DNA from: Chlorokybus atmophyticus
Lineage: Eukaryota; Plantae; Mesostigma and Chlorokybus algae
Reading direction: 5' to 3'
Assembly (NCBI GenBank): GCA_009103225.1
Contig: RHPI01000140.1
Span: 215,961 to 229,270 of the forward strand
DNA: 13,310 nucleotides
The first letter of the stretch is position 1. Each line of letters begins with the position of its first letter. The translations under genes and the position numbers were made by a program. Positions 1,680 to 13,310 of the stretch are shown piece by piece. The notes beneath the pieces were generated by a model. That model ran no database searches. It was not told the DNA's origin and saw only the letters and a program-made list of their open reading frames with translations.

Positions 1680-2760
1680 CACTCACATGAAACACGTTAT
1701 GTATACGTATGGATTGTGGTAACTCCAACCGATACGCGTGAGTGCCGACCCGATCAACCACTTTGAAGGGGCCTATCCATCGAGGGAAAAACTTTCGGGT
1801 ACCCACTCCCTTGATGGATATGTTTTTAATGCTTACAGGCACCGAATTGCCCACATCATGGTCGGTCTGCCTACGATGCTATCAGCTTGGGCTTTCCGTC
1901 TGTCCTGCGCTGCGCGCAGACAGCTCTTTGCCAATGCTAACCTGTCTTGCATGGCCGCAGCCATCTCGCGCGCTGCAGGCACGCGAGTCAAGTCGTTAGC
2001 CGGCAACTTAATACTCGCAGAACTTTGTGGATGCACTCCGTAATTAAGAAAAGCGGAGTTTCCTACACACTCTCTTGCCATGCATTGTTAATCGCGAACT
2101 TAGCCATTGGAAGATAAATATCCCAATCAGACTGATTCGGACTCACATAATGCCGGATGGTTTCCTCAATCACTTGATTGGCGCGTTCAGTCTGACCATC
2201 AGTCTGCGGATGATAAGCGGTACTCATGTGCTGCTGTATCTATAGGAAGTTGCATAGCGACTTCCCAAACTGAGCCACAAACCTCGAGTTCCGGTCAGAG
2301 ACAATGTTGCGAGGTAAGCCATTCAACTCGAACACTAACGCGACAAAACCATCGCTAAATCACGGGAGCCTATCTCCGTACGGCATGGAACAATGTGAAC
2401 CATTTTGGTCAAACTATCCACAAATACTGCAACCGCAGTATGATTCAACGCTGTCTCAGGGAGCTCAGTGATAAGGTCCATACTCACACTTTCCCACTGT
2501 CAGGAACTGGTAACGGCCGCAGTAGCCTTGCGGGCTTTTGACGTAACGGTTTGTCACGTTGCCATTTGTCACACGTGTCCACATACCGCTTCACATCAGT
2601 AGGCAACGATGGCCACTAATACAACTGTTGCACTGCCTTAGTGGTCTTGCGACTACTAAAGTGCCCAGCGTACGGTGGATGGTGTATATCCGCTATGCAT
2701 TTTACACGCAGTTCAGCATGGTCAGGTATTACCAAACTGTTGCTCATGTCATACCGATTG
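1680..2760 (-). pseudogene. pol: Integrase of element A (fragmented)
   Basis: Zn-finger start IHHPPYAGHFS in ORF 2616-2849. GPF module KFFPRWIGPFKVVDRVGTHAYRLELP..IHNVFHVS in ORF 1588-1854. Confidence 0.9.
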
Positions 2761-2919
2761 TTACGTTCGTCAAACTTTTGTAAGTTGTCTGCAATAGAAA
2801 ACCACGGGTCAAAAGCGCCCCTGTACAACAGCTTGCACAAACTCATCATCAGGGGACAATGTGCTGCGTGTCGCGAGTAATTGCGCGCGCATCACTGCCA
2901 GTAATGACGGGCAGCGATG

Positions 2920-3258
2920 CAAAGGGTCAGCCACATTGATTCTGCCCGGCTGATACACCCAATCAAAGGTGAACCTTGACAAAAACTCATTCCAGCGCGC
3001 TTGCCGTCTCGACAAGTTTTGCTGTGTTGAGAAATACACCAACGGGTTGTGATCAGTCACAACAGTGAACTGAACACCCTCCAAGTAACATCTCCATGTG
3101 TCAAGAGCATGAACTATACCCAATAGTGCTTGCTCTGTCGTGATGTAGTTCACCTCTGCAGGAATGAACTTCTTACTCTCAGAAGCACAAAGTCTGCCAT
3201 CTTGCAACAGTACCGCACCACACCCAAGTGTTGATGCGTCACTGACCACTGTGAAGTG
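2920..3258 (-). pseudogene. pol: RNase H of element A
   Basis: FTVVSDASTLGCGAVLLQ...YITTEQALLGIVHALDTWRCYLEG..FTVVTDHNPL...NVADPL in ORF 2809-3600. Confidence 0.93.
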
Positions 3259-3559
3259 TTTATCCCTATTTGACAGTGCTAACACCGTCGCTGATGTTAG
3301 AGCCAACCTCACCTTCTGCATAGCAGCTTCTTGTGCTGTCGTCCAAGTGAACGGGGCATCTTTACGCAACAGTTTGGTCAAAGGCATAACATCTGTCGAG
3401 TACTCCATTATGAACTTGCAAAAGTAGTTTGCCAACCTTGGAGACAATCTTAGTTGATGGACATTTTGAGGTTGGGGCCACTCTTTCACAACCTGCACTT
3501 TGCGAGGGTCAGGTTTGGTACCCGCACCACTCACAATGCGACCAAGAAAGGGCAACTCC

Positions 3560-4205
3560 GTTTTACAAAAACACACTTGGTGAGATTTGCCAACAAACAA
3601 TGCTTGCGCAATCTTGAAAACACCGCTTCCAAGTGTTGCCTATGTTCGTCCTTTGTTTCACTGAAGACAATGATGTCATCCAAGTATATTATGACATGTT
3701 GACCAAGCATATCATCAAAAGTTTTATTCATTTCCTTGTGAAACACAGCGCTTGCAGTAGTCAATCAAAAAAATAACAATTTGTATTGATAATGGCCCAT
3801 AGGTGTTCTGAATGCTGTCTTATAGACATCCGAAGGATGAATACGGATTTGATGATAGCCACTTGTCAAGTTTAGCGTACTAAAGTACGCATTCCCTTAC
3901 AACTTGTCAAACACATCATTAATCCTTGGCAACGGGTATCTGTTGTTTACTGTGATCTTTTTTAGAGCACGGCAATTTACACACATGCGCAACTTCCCAT
4001 TTTCTTTCATAACAAACAAGATGGGTGCACCAAAGGGTGAAGAACTTGGTTCAATCAATCCCTTTTTGAATAACTATGTTATCTGTGTTTCCATTTCCCC
4101 CTTTCACGAGGGCTCAACCTACATACAGGCCGAAATGGAGGCTCACTACTAGGAATTAAAGGTATTGTGTGTCCGACACCTCGATCAGGGGGCAAGCCCG
4201 GCAAC
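3560..4205 (-). pseudogene. pol: Reverse transcriptase of element A (disrupted)
   Basis: Motifs LPGLPPDRGVGH, PSSSPFGAPILFV, RYPLPRI, GYHQIRI and YLDD (3675-3686), interrupted by stops and frameshifts. Confidence 0.93.
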
Positions 4206-4655: not shown

Positions 4656-4994
4656 TGTAACGGTGTGCTACCTCCATAGAGGTTCCCCGCCCTTATTTAG
4701 GATTAAATAAGGGTCCCAACGGGATTATACAGCCTATTAAGCCTTATTAGGGCCGTTAACCTAGTGTTAAGGCCCTAATGTAGTGTTACTTAACTATAAC
4801 ACTGATATCGACATGAGACATGAGTCTCATGTCGATATCAGCTGCATGGCGGCGCTGCTAATGCAGCGGCCGCCATAGCCAGAGCATCTTTTGCTCTGGC
4901 AACTGCCCCGGCAGTGGCGGCGGCGGCGGCGAGGCTGGTGGTGGTGTTGGGGTAGGGGATTAAAGGGAGGAGGGGCACACCCTCTCTCCTGACA
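4656..4994 (+). repeat. Element B 5' LTR
   Basis: TGTAAC...CTGACA, direct repeat of 5667-6005. Confidence 0.97.
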
Positions 4995-5666: not shown

Positions 5667-6005
5667 TGTAACGGTGTGCTACCTCCATAGAGGTTCCCCG
5701 CCCTTATTTAGGATTAAATAAGGGTCCCAACGGGATTATACAGCCTATTAAGCCTTATTAGGGCCGTTAACCTAGTGTTAAGGCCCTAATGTAGTGTTAC
5801 TTAACTATAACACTGATATCGACATGAGACATGAGTCTCATGTTGATATCAGCTGCATGGCGGCGCTGCTAATGCAGCGGCCGCCATAGCCAGAGCATCT
5901 TTTGCTCTGGCAACTGCCCCGGCAGTGGCGGCGGCGGCGGCGAGGCTGGTGGTGGTGTTGGGGTAGGGGATTAAAGGGAGGAGGGGCACACCCTCTCTCC
6001 TGACA
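5667..6005 (+). repeat. Element B 3' LTR
   Basis: Direct repeat of 4656-4994. Confidence 0.97.
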
Positions 6006-7212: not shown

Positions 7213-7451
7213 TGTCGGGTCGGGGGAAGTCGAGGGTCACACTGTTTCGAGCCGCTGCAAGGAAAGTAATGCGTGCTGGTCTTGGTGCTGCAACATGTTA
7301 TAACCTGTGGCAAAAGCAAAAGATAACCTAGCTTGTATGGCGAGGAATGCTTGGTGGAGCTGCTCCACTATTGCTGAGTCACACGGACATGTGGAGGCGG
7401 TGTCCTCCTTAGTGTACATGCTATGCTGTAGGACACACAGTCAACAAGCCA
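7213..7451 (-). repeat. Orphan (solo-like) LTR of the element C family
   Basis: Direct repeat of 8046-8283 with 7 substitutions and 1 indel by eye, and TG...CA ends. It has no PBS, no PPT and no TSD (TCATT vs CTACT). Confidence 0.88.
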
Positions 7452-8045
7452 CTACTACAGGTAGTGCTGTTTACACAGTTCTTTGCATGTGCGGAATATG
7501 TGTTACACTGTTAAGTGAGGTGAATGGGCAAGCAACACGTGGATACTGTGCCCTGACTGATGCCAACAAGCACACTGCAACCAGGCACACCAAGCCCACA
7601 GTGATGTCAAGCACGATGCACACGCGAGCATGCACAGGCTCTCACACAGTGGAGGGGTTCTTGATAACCGGGATGGCGTGTTCGTAGTTCAAGTCGTTTC
7701 ACAAGCTCTTAGCTTTCTCACTCACAGTGTCACCAGCTGATCCGGTGAACACTGTGACTACTTATACAAGTCAAATTATGACTGTTCAGAACATAAGCTA
7801 ACGGTCATATCGAGGCTATTTCCACAGCAATTGTCACTTGATATAGAACACAACTTATAGCTGAACTCACAACTGAACAGCTACGCGCGGTGCCTATGTG
7901 GGCTATGGTCGTGAGCTACCCTGAAGTCATAACCTAGCTACTGGTCAGGGTCGCGCGCGCGTTGGTATGTCGATAGGCCGGGCGACGGTTTCGGTGTAGG
8001 CATGCCCGATGAAGGCTGGTATGTGTGGGCACCAGGCATGACAGC

Positions 8046-8283
8046 TGTCGGGTCAGGGGAAGTCGAGGGTCACACTGTCTCGGGCCGCTGCAAGGAAAGT
8101 CATGCGTGCTGGTCCTGGTGCTGCACATGTTATAACCTGTGGCAAAAGCAAAAGATAACCAAGCTTGTATGGCGAGGAATGCTTGGTGGAGCTGCTCCAC
8201 TATTGCTGAGTCACACGGACATGTGGAGGCGGTGTCCTCCTTAGTGTACATGCTGTGCTGTAGGACACACAGTCAACAAGCCA
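8046..8283 (-). repeat. Element C 3' LTR (238 bp)
   Basis: TGGCTTG...CCGACA on the minus strand. Its boundaries are defined by the copy at 7213-7451 and by the PPT. Confidence 0.9.
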
Positions 8284-8292
8284 CCCCCCCCT
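8284..8292 (-). promoter_or_regulatory. Element C polypurine tract
   Basis: AGGGGGGGG directly precedes the LTR, about 40 nt after the pol stop codon. Confidence 0.88.
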
Positions 8293-8359
8293 GAGCTTCT
8301 GGGGAAATTCCAGCTCCAGAGCTCCGCTGCTAATGCAGGTGAGGCGGGCCGTTGGTGCG

Positions 8360-8494
8360 GCAATCGTCGCACCAGTACTCCTCCATGGGTATTGCGTCCA
8401 ATGGGGGCTCCAAACAGTAGCAATGCAGGCCCTTGTTACAGCCATCGCAGAGCATCATGAGTGCCTCATCGGCGGCGCTGTCGCAGCGTTCACA
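8360..8494 (-). pseudogene. pol: PHD finger (C4HC3) at the integrase C-terminus
   Basis: CERC...MMLCDGCNKGLHCYCLEPPLDAIPMEEYWCDDC, with all eight Zn ligands present. Confidence 0.93.
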
Positions 8495-9640
8495 GCGTGT
8501 GCTACGGGCGGGGCGAGGGTGCTGGATGCGCGCGAAGCCTGCTACGTAGGGGAGGTGACATGGCGCGCAATTCACCATGTTGTCCTTCAACCTCTCGCCA
8601 TTCTGACCAAGAAGGTCCAGCACTCCTGTGGGGTACACCTTAAGTACCTTGTAGCCGGTGCGGCCCACGGAGGTGTCGAGCGTGTCCTTGATGGCTGCCA
8701 TACGATAGGCAAAGTCACTGGCTTGAAACCGCCGTTGGCGCTCCTTGTAGAAGCCGCTTCGCACGCTCTCGTAGCGCAGAGTGTCACGGTGCTGTGCGAT
8801 GCGCAGGTTGTGGAAGGCCATTGGGACGGTGTGCTCAAACAGCGTGGCACGTGTGGTGATGTCGTGGTGCATCCAGTCGAGATCGTCGAAGTTGTCCACC
8901 ACACGGTCTACTTCCTGTTGTGGACGAAAAAGAAGCAACGGCGGATGCCCGAACAGCAAGTAGTATGGACTGTACTCGCGCAGCGCCGCCTGCTTCGACA
9001 ATCGGTAGCCCTGAGCCACCCACGGAAGGTGGTCGTCCCGGGTGTTCTTCTCATAATCCAGCACGTACTTGCGGAGTGCCTTTTTGATAGTCTGCACCGT
9101 CCGCTCGGCGAGACCGTCGGCTTGAGGGTGGTTACGCGAAGTATGGGGATGATCGATGTAGCATCTGTCAAGCAGGGTGTCGAACTCCCCCCTGAACTTA
9201 GTGCCCTGGTCGGTGATGACCTCAGCGCAACTGCCGAACCGGCTGAGGACATGGGAGAGGAAAGCTTGAGCCACCCCCCTGCTGCTCTTGTCGGGTATTG
9301 GCACCAGCTCCACTCATTTGGAGAAGTGCTCGATCATGACGAGGATGTAGCGGTTGCCCCGCGCCGAGGGTGCCAAGTCTCCCAAGATGTCGAGTCCCCA
9401 GCGGTAAAACAGCCCGGTGATGGGGAGAGGATGCAAGGTGGCGCTACGTGTGTTGAGGCTGGCACGTACCATGTCACACTGCTGGCAGCGACTGACGAAC
9501 CCCTGCACCTGTTTGGACAGCCCATACCACCAATATTGCGCTCTTACCAGGCTGACGGTACGCTTGACACCGAAGTGCCCCAGCTCCTTGTGGAGGGCAG
9601 CGATTATAGCCTCGCGTGTGGCTGATGTTGGCACCTTGTC
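8495..9640 (-). pseudogene. pol: Integrase of element C (one W-to-stop change at 9314-9316)
   Basis: HHCC finger HKELGH...CQQC (9476-9592). Core motifs WGLDILG, ITDQGTKF and HPQADGLAERTVQT. Confidence 0.95.
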
Positions 9641-10039
9641 CTCGTCCTGAACGCGGCGGTACACTTTATCACCCGCCCACTGGTAGTGGTTGCGCTGACT
9701 GACACGATCTTTCTCCCGTGCACTCATATTTGAGGGAAGCTGGCCACTTTGAAGGAAGGAGAGTGATGGCTTGTCCAGCCATATGCCCTGCCTGGTGTCG
9801 GTGGGTGCTAGCTCGGTGTCGTCGACTTCGATGTTGGCCGCGTGGACGTCCCCTAGTGGTGTGGTCACTTTGGGGTCCGCAGCCTCAAGGGCAGGCACCT
9901 CCTCCGTCGTTGAGGTGGTGTTGATCTGGCGCCCTGACCGTAACGCGGCAGCAGCAAATATGGCCGCCATGGTGGGAGCTGCTGCGGTGGGGCCGAGCTC
10001 GTGTCGAGCTTCGATTGCATCGTTGGTACTGCGGTGAGG

Positions 10040-10402
10040 GTTGCGACTGAGGCCATCAGCGTCTTGATTGGTGAGGCCGGCGCGGTGGTCGATCTCGAAG
10101 TCATACTCCTGCAGCAACAGGGCCCAGCGAGCAAGTTTCCCTGTCAAATGTTGGTTGGTTATCAACCATTTGAGTGGTTGATGATCGGTGATTAGCTGGA
10201 ATTGTTGACCAAAAAGGAAAGGTCTAAAGAAGGAGATAGCCCACACTGCAGCGAGGCACTCCCCCTCGTAGCTGCTGTTGTTGGCCTCAGCGCTGTTGTT
10301 GCTTCGGCTGGCGTACGACGCCACCCGCTCCTTCTTGTTCTCATCGTGCTGTACCAGCACAGCCCCCATCCCAGGTTTGCTCCAATCGGTGTGGAGAATG
10401 AA
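10040..10402 (-). pseudogene. pol: RNase H of element C
   Basis: FILHTDWS..GMGAVLVQ, SSYEGECLAAVWAI, LITDHQPLKWL and DADGLSR. Confidence 0.95.
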
Positions 10403-10679
10403 GGGCTTGTTGTAGTCAGGGCGTTGCAGGATGGGAGCGATGGTGAGTCTGCCCTTTAGCTCCTCAAACGCCTGCTGTTGTGGCCCCTTCCACGCAAACT
10501 CCACCTTCTTCTTCAGGAGCTCGTTGAAGGGTCGTTCAATCTTTGCGAAGTTCTTCACGAAACGGCGATAGTAGTTGGCAAGGCCCAGAAAGGCATGCAG
10601 ACGCGTAAGGTCCGTGGGAGCAGGGATAGCCGCCAAAGCCTCCACCTTTGCCTGCTGTACGTACACACCGTGGGGCACA

Positions 10680-11326
10680 ATCATGTGCCCTAGGTAGGGT
10701 ACCTTGCGAGTAAAGAAGGTGCAGTTGTCGGGGTGCACTGTCATCCCCACCCCTTTGAGTCTCTCCAGCACTTCCTCGATGTGCTGCAGGTGCTCGTCGT
10801 TACTGCGACTGAAGATGAGAATGTCATCAATATAGCATCGCGCGAAGTCCAGCCCTTTCAAGGCTTTGTCCATGACGCGCTGGAACTTGGCAAGAGCGTT
10901 CTTCAGTCCGAAGGGCATGACCTTCCACTGGTACAGCTGCCGGTTGCCCCATAAAGAGGTCTTGTGCTTGTCCTCCTCCTTGATGGCGATCTGGTTGTAC
11001 CCTTGGCGCATATCCAGGATGCTGAAGACGGTACAGTCTCCTACATCATTAAAGATACCCTATGCAGTAGGCATTGGATACCTGTCTTATTTGGTCTTGT
11101 TGTTGAGGGGGCGATAATCGCCGCACATGCGCCGGTCTGTCCAGTTGCCTGCTGAATCCTTCTTCAAGGGCATGACGGTCGCGGCCGCAAAGTCCGATGT
11201 GAACTCCTCAATTAGGCCTGCACCTAATAGAGCCTTGCACCTCTGCTCCACCAAGTCCTCTTCCAACTTGGAGAGTCGGTACTGTCGCCGAAACACCGGT
11301 TCGGTGTCCACCAACTCGATGTCCAT
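10680..11326 (-). pseudogene. pol: Reverse transcriptase of element C (stops at 11087 and 11060)
   Basis: RRMCGDYRPLN, RYPMP, LDMRQGYNQI, VMPFGLKNA, YIDD (10823-10834) and YLGH. Confidence 0.96.
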
Positions 11327-11617
11327 CTGGTAAACTGAGCAAACACCCAGTTCCCTTACACTGAAACTGAACTGACTCCTCCACTTGTTGAGGAGAGCCT
11401 CCAGTTGTTCTTGCGTCTGGCCTGTAGCCAGTGGTCCAATGGCATGAGATCAAGAGGTGGCGTTGGCGACCACAGGGATGTCCTCCACAGTGACTGCTGC
11501 CTGCTCCTCCATATGGGCGATTTCGAGGGCGGTGTGTGCCGCTTTGGTCTCTTGCCCGCGACCGGCCCACCCCCCTGCCAGGTGTTCGAGCTCCTGGAAG
11601 GACACATGGCGGTCTTA

Positions 11618-12580
11618 GAGAGCAAAGCACATTTTCAATAACCATACCATGCTGTTCTGATCCATGGCGCGTCCCAGCAACTGGCATTGCTGACTGTCGG
11701 TCAACGTGGAACTTGTGACACTGCCTGGAGAGAAGCCCATGGCGCGTTCGCGCTCACGTGCATTGGGTTCCTCCAGCTGGCCTGTGTTGGAATCCAACAA
11801 CATGCCGGCGCCGTGGTTGCGGAAGGCGTACGATCCTGGGTAGGACACCAGGGTGGGGAGCGCACGACGTGGTTGACCAGGTTGGTTGCATTGGTAGAAG
11901 TGGTGGTGATCGCGTCGGGTGACTGGTTGTGCTGTTCGGCTAGGGTCCAAGATAGCATCGATTGCCAGATTGCGTGGACGACTGCTGTGCAGATATTCAG
12001 CAGCATAGAGATCTTCAACTGTTGCCAGGTTGGTCCACTCGGCGCGGACGCGGTGTGCCCGAGAGCCATGTCGTGCTGAGTTGATTCTGAGAGGATGCCC
12101 CAATAACGAACACACCTGTCGGAAGCTGTTGGCCACGTGATGGCGCGTATCGTCCTCGGAGTGCACATTCTCGATGATGTACCTTGGAGGCCTGAACAGC
12201 TGGTCGCTCTGCAGAAATTTGACCCGCATCAGTTACCAGAACAGTTGTGAGCGAGGATCAGCGAGTCCTTGGCCGGTGCCTGCTCTGGAGTGTCCTTGAC
12301 ACTCCCATCCTGCTATCAGCAAGTCGATGTTGCCCACCGCTAGGAGGTGATCCGCAGTGATTAAACGGATGCCCTGTGGCAGTGCCTTCAGACTGCCTTG
12401 CAGTGCCGATAGCGGCAGTAGCTGCGGGTAGCATTTGTGTAGGTGGCGCAGGTGGTGGCCCAGAGCAATCTATGCGTGTGGATCAGGGTCGCAGTAGAAG
12501 TATTTGGTGACCGTCGCATCGGTGTTGAGAACAGTGACGAGGCCACTACCTATTCCTTCGAATAGTTCCAACACGGTGAT
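11618..12580 (-). pseudogene. C5 cytosine DNA methyltransferase domain (DNMT3-like), in frame within pol; stops at 12470 and 12233
   Basis: Motif I VLELFEGIG; motif IV DLLIAGWECQGHSRAG (Cys codon 12299-12301); motif VI YIIENV; motif VIII SRAHRVRAEWTNL; motifs IX/X ERERAMGF...QCQLLGRAMD. All are in the correct order. Confidence 0.92.
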
Positions 12581-12825
12581 GCCTTGTTGTCGCCGGAATA
12601 CGTGAAATTCCACTACTCCAGTGGCCACCTGGTGTTGTTTCTGGACAGCAGCTTGGTCCTTGTAGAGAGGGAACCGTGAAGTGAGCCGCGGTCTGGTCAG
12701 TAGCAGATGTGCGACCACCTGTGCGCGCCAGCGGCGTTCCGCTGGTTGCTGGTGGGCCACTTTCTCAGTGGCATCTTTCTGAGACTCGTCGTATGGGATA
12801 GGAGAGTCTTGGTTCGCGTTGTGGG

Positions 12826-12938
12826 TGACCACCGCAGATGATCTGTCAGTGGTTGTCGAGCCCGACCTGTGGGTGGCTGTCGCAGCTGACCTGTCAGTGG
12901 TTGCCGACGACGACCTGTAGGTAGCTGTTGCAGCTGAC
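12826..12938 (-). repeat. Imperfect 48-bp tandem repeat (about 2.3 units) encoding a Ser/Thr/Ala-rich linker
   Basis: Peptide units SAATATYRSSSATTDR / SAATATHRSGSTTTDR / SSAVVTH. Confidence 0.85.
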
Positions 12939-13023
12939 TTTTGGTGGGATCGAGTGCGGGCCACCAACTTGAGAGGCAGGTATCCATGAACCTCCCCGTC
13001 CTCCTCATCTCAATGAGGACAAA

Positions 13024-13310
13024 TCAGGCCTTTTCTGTCCAGCAATCCAGCCCCATGCCAACAGGGAAGTTGAAGTCCTGTCCCAACAACAGGTCGAAAG
13101 ACCCTGCGTCGGTGACCACACACTTCTGTATGACCTCGGTGCTGTGGGACGGTTCCTCTCCTATTAAGCGAATGCAGAGGGCTTGCTTGGTGATACTGAT
13201 CACCTTGTCCCGGCTGCCGGTTGCAATGTCGAGCACGTATGGGCACGGCATCAGCTCAGCGCTGGTGATGCCAAGGTCACGTGCGAGGTAACGTCCGATG
13301 ATGATAGGCT
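13024..13310 (-). pseudogene. pol: Aspartic protease of element C, C-terminal part; the catalytic triad is probably just outside the window
   Basis: PIIIGRYLARDLGIT...SFDLLLGQDF has a retropepsin-like DLLLG tail. It is offset by one frameshift (near 13010-13030) from the rest of pol. Confidence 0.75.

Follow-up and report, generated by a model that had tools for sequence, protein, structure and literature searches.

The closest described relatives of the element analysed here come from a 2018 study of retrotransposons that carry DNA methyltransferases (de Mendoza et al.; PMC5890265), which a sequence-only reading of this DNA had correctly cited as precedent. KnitGypsy-Dnmt3 of Klebsormidium nitens has its methyltransferase within the Pol ORF of a Gypsy element, where it is under purifying selection, and the repeats of the element have the layout A-coding-B-A-B (PMC5890265). 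In the tree of that study the Klebsormidium retrotransposon DNMTs group with DNMT3 (PMC5890265). The Klebsormidium Gypsy domain gave no methylation in yeast, a result that the authors call inconclusive; the domains of SymbioDIRS-Dnmt3, for which they inferred an independent acquisition, carried out de novo CG methylation in yeast, and self-methylation of the cDNA or of the new insertion was proposed for the DIRS elements with DNMT3 (PMC5890265). A 2026 preprint names the type 'streptophytes (Gypsy-DNMT3)'. A 5-methylcytosine writer borne by a retrotransposon inverts the usual view of methylation as a weapon of the host against transposons. To our knowledge, none of the Gypsy-borne DNMT3 domains has yet been demonstrated to be active.

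The window is the whole stretch of DNA that was analysed, 13,310 nucleotides from Chlorokybus atmophyticus (contig RHPI01000140.1, positions 215,961 to 229,270). It very probably holds a Gypsy-DNMT3 retrotransposon that has decayed and no longer codes for protein, with the pol order protease, DNMT, reverse transcriptase (RT), RNase H (RH), integrase (IN) and PHD finger. This kind of element has already been published as KnitGypsy-Dnmt3 (PMC5890265), and the window copy is a further member. A full-text literature search returned nothing on Chlorokybus copies, and with the present one the hosts come to include a lineage from the base of the streptophytes. The relative P0173 is an intact metagenomic ORF of 2358 residues in which Pfam places Asp_protease, DNA_methylase, RVT_1, RNase H, integrase and PHD in that order. 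The features of the window copy are as follows.

13039 to 13308, minus strand: protease, C-terminal half only (tblastn with P0173 residues 680-769, 31% identity, E 4e-11, frame -3)
12820 to 12915, minus strand: tandem duplication of 48 nt (16 codons) in the protease-DNMT linker (repeat search, two copies, 79% identical)
11618 to 12640, minus strand: DNMT3-like C5 cytosine methyltransferase domain (PF00145, family HMM and motif order)
10679 to 11449, minus strand: reverse transcriptase (Pfam RVT_1, E 1e-26; YIDD at 10823-10834)
10103 to 10492, minus strand: RNase H (Pfam RT_RNaseH, E 1.6e-34, and RT_RNaseH_2, E 1.1e-30)
8900 to 9625, minus strand: integrase, with an H2C2 zinc finger at 9461-9625 (Pfam Integrase_H2C2, E 2e-15) and the DDE core
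8360 to 8494, minus strand: PHD finger at the integrase C-terminus (Pfam PHD, E 2.1e-8)
8330 to 8332, minus strand: pol stop codon (translation)
8046 to 8284, minus strand: 3' direct repeat, copy one, a candidate B1 in the A-coding-B-A-B layout (repeat families D2 and D4)
7213 to 7452, minus strand: 3' direct repeat, copy two, a candidate B2 and likely 3' end of the element (repeat search)

Read in the minus-strand frame that starts at 13309, the DNA encodes a continuous pol-like sequence that begins near 13255 and ends at the stop at 8330-8332, with point stops as the sole interruptions. The DNMT, RT, RNase H, integrase and PHD finger lie in one frame (-2) from about 12715 to 8333, and residues 910-2350 of P0173 align with 12715-8342 in a single tblastn alignment at 43.7% identity. 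The sequence-only reading had put the DNMT in the same frame as RT, RNase H and integrase, and this alignment bears it out. It had also named a protease as the upstream neighbour. That protease is real, but the window ends inside it, so that only the C-terminal half is present, and it is read in frame -3, against -2 for DNMT to PHD. An extra letter at position 13020 is found in one contig of run X1 and in one of run X2, and an indel in the window copy is therefore the likely cause of the change of frame. Pfam finds no match to the protease fragment of the window on its own; it places Asp_protease_2 at residues 663-711 of P0173. The integrase core aligns with the rve region of P0173 and P0170, and the PHD finger stands at the same position in P0173 and in most relatives. 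The RT-RNase H part is 61% identical to that of P0171, and about 61% is the highest identity of any database protein to the window.

Directly after pol come the two copies of the 3' repeat (240 nt), about 97% identical and separated by a spacer of 590 nt. They fit the B-A-B end of the A-coding-B-A-B layout of KnitGypsy-Dnmt3 (PMC5890265), with the 5' end of the element lying beyond the window.

The remainder of the window contains other repetitive DNA. The minus strand at 2100-4100 holds another Gypsy RT-RNase H-integrase, more decayed than the first; it is scattered over several frames and shows 30-39% identity to the same set of relatives, and tblastn gave no DNMT match beside it. Direct repeats of 300 nt at 4656-4955 and 5667-5966 are 100% identical and 1011 nt apart, each with a 40-nt palindrome, and have inverted matches near 1070-1351.

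The methyltransferase motifs, all located by translation, are these.

12548 to 12574, minus strand: motif I, VLELFEGIG
12296 to 12313, minus strand: motif IV, AGWECQ
12164 to 12178, minus strand: motif VI, IIENV
12035 to 12058, minus strand: motif VIII, AHRVRAEW
11732 to 11758, minus strand: motif IX, RERERAMGF
11660 to 11680, minus strand: motif X, LLGRAMD

Motifs I, IV, VI, VIII and IX/X had been picked out by eye from the letters, and each was found again, in order and in one minus-strand frame. The catalytic Cys, the Glu of ENV and the Arg residues of RxR are all present in the window, and the motifs align with those of 28 relatives (alignment A1). The domain had been given a start at 12580; it begins further out, near 12640. 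Two stops had been described within it, and both are there, but a third stands at its C-terminal edge.

PF00145 matches the 78-residue piece at 12236-12469 alone with E 4.6e-6 and 26.7 bits, above the gathering cut-off of 22, in agreement with the check on this profile that had been proposed. The other two DNMT pieces (that with motif I, and 11618-12232) have no Pfam match alone. Intact relatives match PF00145 with E values down to 5.9e-12. We built a family HMM of 365 positions from 119 relatives, leaving the window out. Read with X in place of each stop, the window domain reaches 395 bits against it over positions 7-363 of the 365; 200 shuffles of its residues gave 5.3 bits at most. The match is far beyond chance.

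The family profile was compared with PDB sequences. The top match is DNMT3A, with 84 bits (E 7e-23), followed by DNMT3C and DNMT3B with about 77 bits, DRM with 51, M.HaeIII with 41, M.HhaI with 38 and DNMT2 with 28. The DNMT3A motifs that the sequence-only reading had quoted can all be seen where the profile is aligned with PDB chain 2qrv_A. Single DNMT pieces of the window gave nothing significant against PDB sequences, the match being made by the family profile. Evidence on the fold comes from an intact relative, P0032:960-1300, which is 42% identical to the window pieces, and not from the window chain. Its AlphaFold2 model has a mean pLDDT of 94.7, and its best 50 PDB matches, every one of them DNMT3A/B/C, reach E 8e-19, the best having target-normalised TM-scores of 0.82-0.84. 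The proposed check of the fold thus came out in favour of a DNMT3-type methyltransferase, and the window matches end to end the HMM of the family to which the folded relative belongs. The order of the motifs is non-rearranged, unlike that of DRM. Judged by profile and model, the window domain appears closest to DNMT3 among characterised methyltransferases. In cellular DNMT3 proteins a PWWP and/or an ADD domain is commonly found N-terminal of the catalytic domain. Pfam finds no PWWP or ADD here, and the sole reader domain is the PHD finger after the integrase.

The domain is a genuine part of the element. Contig pieces covering 8300-13310 number 828 and 351 in two sequencing runs, with both DNMT junctions included, and are diverged from the window (85-99% identity); all runs in which the stretch occurs consist of contigs of DNA or unknown type. 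Pieces from other copies bridge the junctions, for example 11180-11755 and 12595-12813, and in 16 database relatives, too, the DNMT precedes RT. Since P0173 is colinear and contigs of other copies bridge both junctions, a secondary insertion private to this copy is excluded: other family copies and distant relatives alike carry the DNMT at the same position. The DNMT belongs to a multi-copy family with a fixed position in pol. The central claim of the earlier reading, a DNMT in a Ty3/Gypsy pol between protease and RT, is upheld by the colinearity with P0173, the Pfam domains and the family HMM.

The window copy itself is dead. Eight premature stops interrupt pol, and three of these fall within the DNMT or at its edge; the eight include the following, located by translation.

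12470 to 12472, minus strand: stop inside the DNMT
12233 to 12235, minus strand: stop inside the DNMT
11615 to 11617, minus strand: stop at the C-terminal edge of the DNMT
11450 to 11452, minus strand: stop in the DNMT-RT linker, just upstream of RT
11087 to 11089, minus strand: stop in RT
11060 to 11062, minus strand: stop in RT
9314 to 9316, minus strand: stop that splits the integrase

At position 9314 every contig covering the site has a different letter from the window, and the stop at 9314-9316 is therefore private to the window copy. We took the 40 differences from the contigs that have the best support; nearly all of these are read by every contig covering the site. At 30 of the 40 (75%) the window has T or A where the contigs have C or G. 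The copy is a fossil, changed mainly by C-to-T and G-to-A; it cannot make an enzyme, and as a locus it is inert and ordinary. A CpG signature of decay was not found among these 30 changes: seven are at CpG, and all sequence contexts are represented. As the changes are not enriched at CpG, the pattern of decay provides no evidence of CG methylation of the window copy. The ratio of observed to expected CpG is 0.7-0.8 across the element.

The sequence of motif IV requires closer attention. The window has Gly-Trp-Glu-Cys-Gln (12296-12313), that is Glu-Cys without Pro-Cys. The Pro-Cys dipeptide is the classical signature of C5 methyltransferases, yet the catalytic Cys is preceded by Glu in 80 of the 119 relatives, by Pro in 31 and by another residue in eight. 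Glu-Cys is therefore a peculiarity of the family rather than a product of decay in this copy. Across the same 119 diverged relatives the Cys of motif IV and the Glu of motif VI are invariant, and the two Arg residues of motif VIII and the first glycine of motif I nearly so. Such conservation of catalytic residues argues for a selected enzymatic role of the domain in the family.

Other explanations must be weighed against a family of retrotransposons with a DNMT3-type enzyme in pol. The arrangement might be an accident of this locus only, a Gypsy element having inserted beside or into a DNMT3 gene of the host. We found nothing in favour of this and give it virtually no credence, given that one ORF carries this order in each of the intact relatives P0173, P0170 and P0032, that the RT tree agrees with the DNMT tree and that contigs of other copies run across both junctions. 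The origin of the domain is a separate matter, and a bacterial or viral enzyme of the Dcm type captured by the element might be considered in place of a DNMT3. The tail of motif IV, CQDLS.AG or CQGHS.AG, does resemble the bacterial GSPCQDLS.AG seen in the weak matches P0256-P0263, and the family DNMT tree contains no cellular algal DNMT3 as a root. Such a source is nonetheless highly improbable: the profile scores DNMT3A at more than twice the bits of either M.HaeIII or M.HhaI, the 50 best structural matches are DNMT3A/B/C without exception, and the 2018 tree puts the Klebsormidium retrotransposon DNMTs with DNMT3 (PMC5890265). The weak matches P0255-P0263 were considered as outgroups for the DNMT tree and were left out as bacterial-looking (GSPCQDLS).

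A DNMT3 origin would also be consistent with a catalytically dead protein similar to DNMT3L, kept for binding DNA or chromatin, or for recruiting or titrating the DNMT3 of the host. The replacement of Pro by Glu before the Cys, in the window and in two thirds of the relatives, could be read in this way, as could the absence of methylation by KnitGypsy-Dnmt3 in yeast (PMC5890265); yet human DNMT3B was likewise negative in yeast. Moreover Pro-Cys is kept in 31 of the 119, so that the two forms interchange within one family. Pseudo-enzymes of the DNMT3L type lose the catalytic Cys, the Glu-Asn of motif VI, the Arg-x-Arg of motif VIII and the glycines of motif I, and these are precisely the residues that are invariant or nearly invariant here, in 119 sequences at 30-45% identity. 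We therefore regard a dead enzyme as unlikely, and retain the reading of an element family whose DNMT3-type domain was probably maintained for catalysis.

The element type had been thought rare, and this is not borne out. A phmmer search with the 205-residue C-terminal DNMT piece against 1.84 billion representatives matched 703 clusters (at 50% identity) with E <=1e-3, of which 383 had E <=1e-10. The named hosts are Closterium, Marchantia, Monoraphidium and Chromochloris, and by this survey the type is common across green algae and liverworts. Most of the long matches have the order RT-RH-DNMT-IN-PHD; the window type, protease (PR)-DNMT-RT-RH-IN(-PHD), is found in a minority. The DNMT thus has two sites within one green-lineage Gypsy family, between RNase H and integrase (P0005, P0023, P0029, P0054) or between protease and RT (P0032, P0170, P0173). 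The two orders are separated by a branch with support of 100 in the RT-RH tree and of 97 in the DNMT tree, the latter made of family members only. In both trees the window falls with the DNMT-before-RT lineage, whose named members are Closterium spp. and Marchantia polymorpha (Mp_2g26090). The named streptophytes, Closterium, Marchantia and the window, have PR-DNMT-RT-RH-IN-PHD. Monoraphidium neglectum, the only named chlorophyte with enough of pol for the order to be read, has RT-RH-DNMT-IN-PHD and is the sole named member with the order read as RH-DNMT-IN. A DNMT-only fragment from Chromochloris zofingiensis has the form of motif IV typical of the RH-DNMT-IN lineage. In an RT tree with animal and fungal Gypsy outgroups the window lies in a clade (support 98) with P0171 and liverwort copies; Klebsormidium and Closterium are in separate clades, and the RH-DNMT-IN clade is nested among others with weak support.

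Two further observations were made on metagenomic sequences. The ORFs P0163-P0169, of about 1330 residues, each encode aspartic protease and DNMT but no RT; in some relatives a break in pol may follow the DNMT. The contig that encodes P0173 (L004:1-18357) repeats a unit of 8261/8262 nt in perfect tandem, 2.2 times over, the reported repeat segments being 100% identical. The name of this contig ends in '_c', and the contig represents either a tandem array or an apparently live element in circular form.

A broader history can be proposed, in which Gypsy-DNMT3 would be no peculiarity of Klebsormidium and instead an old and largely vertical family of the whole green lineage with two architectures, its DNMT captured once and later moved, and its Glu-Cys loop belonging to an altered enzyme. 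Taken as a whole we find this rather doubtful. If it were true, the Glu-Cys loop could mark an enzyme adapted, for example, to cDNA intermediates rather than to chromatin.

In intact members pol is a single ORF, and the DNMT3-type domain would therefore be made together with the enzymes of replication. Most likely it would then use S-adenosylmethionine to place 5-methylcytosine either on double-stranded cDNA of the element itself or on the fresh insertion, so that new copies would bear a host-like methylation mark, and the PHD finger carried by the integrase would steer the choice of integration site. For the ancestral element the sequence-only reading had suggested such methylation of new cDNA copies, or else a modulation of host silencing. 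The existence of naturally intact members makes it possible to ask what the enzyme methylates, and to whose benefit.

Comparison with known systems places the window nearest to KnitGypsy-Dnmt3. Both have a DNMT3-type, non-rearranged domain in a Ty3/Gypsy Pol ORF with a DDE integrase, both have streptophyte hosts, and the direct repeats, which in KnitGypsy-Dnmt3 are other than two plain LTRs, may be so here too (a candidate B...B pair lies at the 3' end of the window copy). Pol proteins of K. nitens are about 45% identical to the window over the RT-RH-integrase zinc-finger piece, and belong to the same green-lineage family; a DNMT-bearing K. nitens protein was not among the homology-search matches listed. 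The two differ in host, and the RT of the window groups with P0171 and the liverwort copies, not with the Klebsormidium clade. SymbioDIRS-Dnmt3 of Symbiodinium resembles the window family in having a DNMT3-type domain in a Pol polyprotein, and in having two domain orders within one host group, but its backbone is that of a DIRS element with a tyrosine recombinase, rather than a Gypsy element with DDE integrase and PHD. The EpiLTRs of Euglena and Collodictyon (bioRxiv 10.64898/2026.05.21.726589) are also LTR retrotransposons with a cytosine methyltransferase and a chromatin-reader domain; unlike the window, their DNMT is sister to DNMT4, and they have a Dam-type adenine methyltransferase and a chromodomain. 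Cellular DNMT3A, 3B and 3C share the motif order of the window family, with motifs VI, VIII and IX very similar, yet the identity is only about 21%. The window family is without PWWP or ADD and has about 25 more residues from motif VIII to motif IX, and the window copy differs further in having Glu-Cys, not Pro-Cys, and in the location of its domain within a retrotransposon polyprotein. What is added to the published element is detail, namely the size of the family, the two architectures of pol and the Glu-Cys loop, and these may deserve the attention of a specialist.
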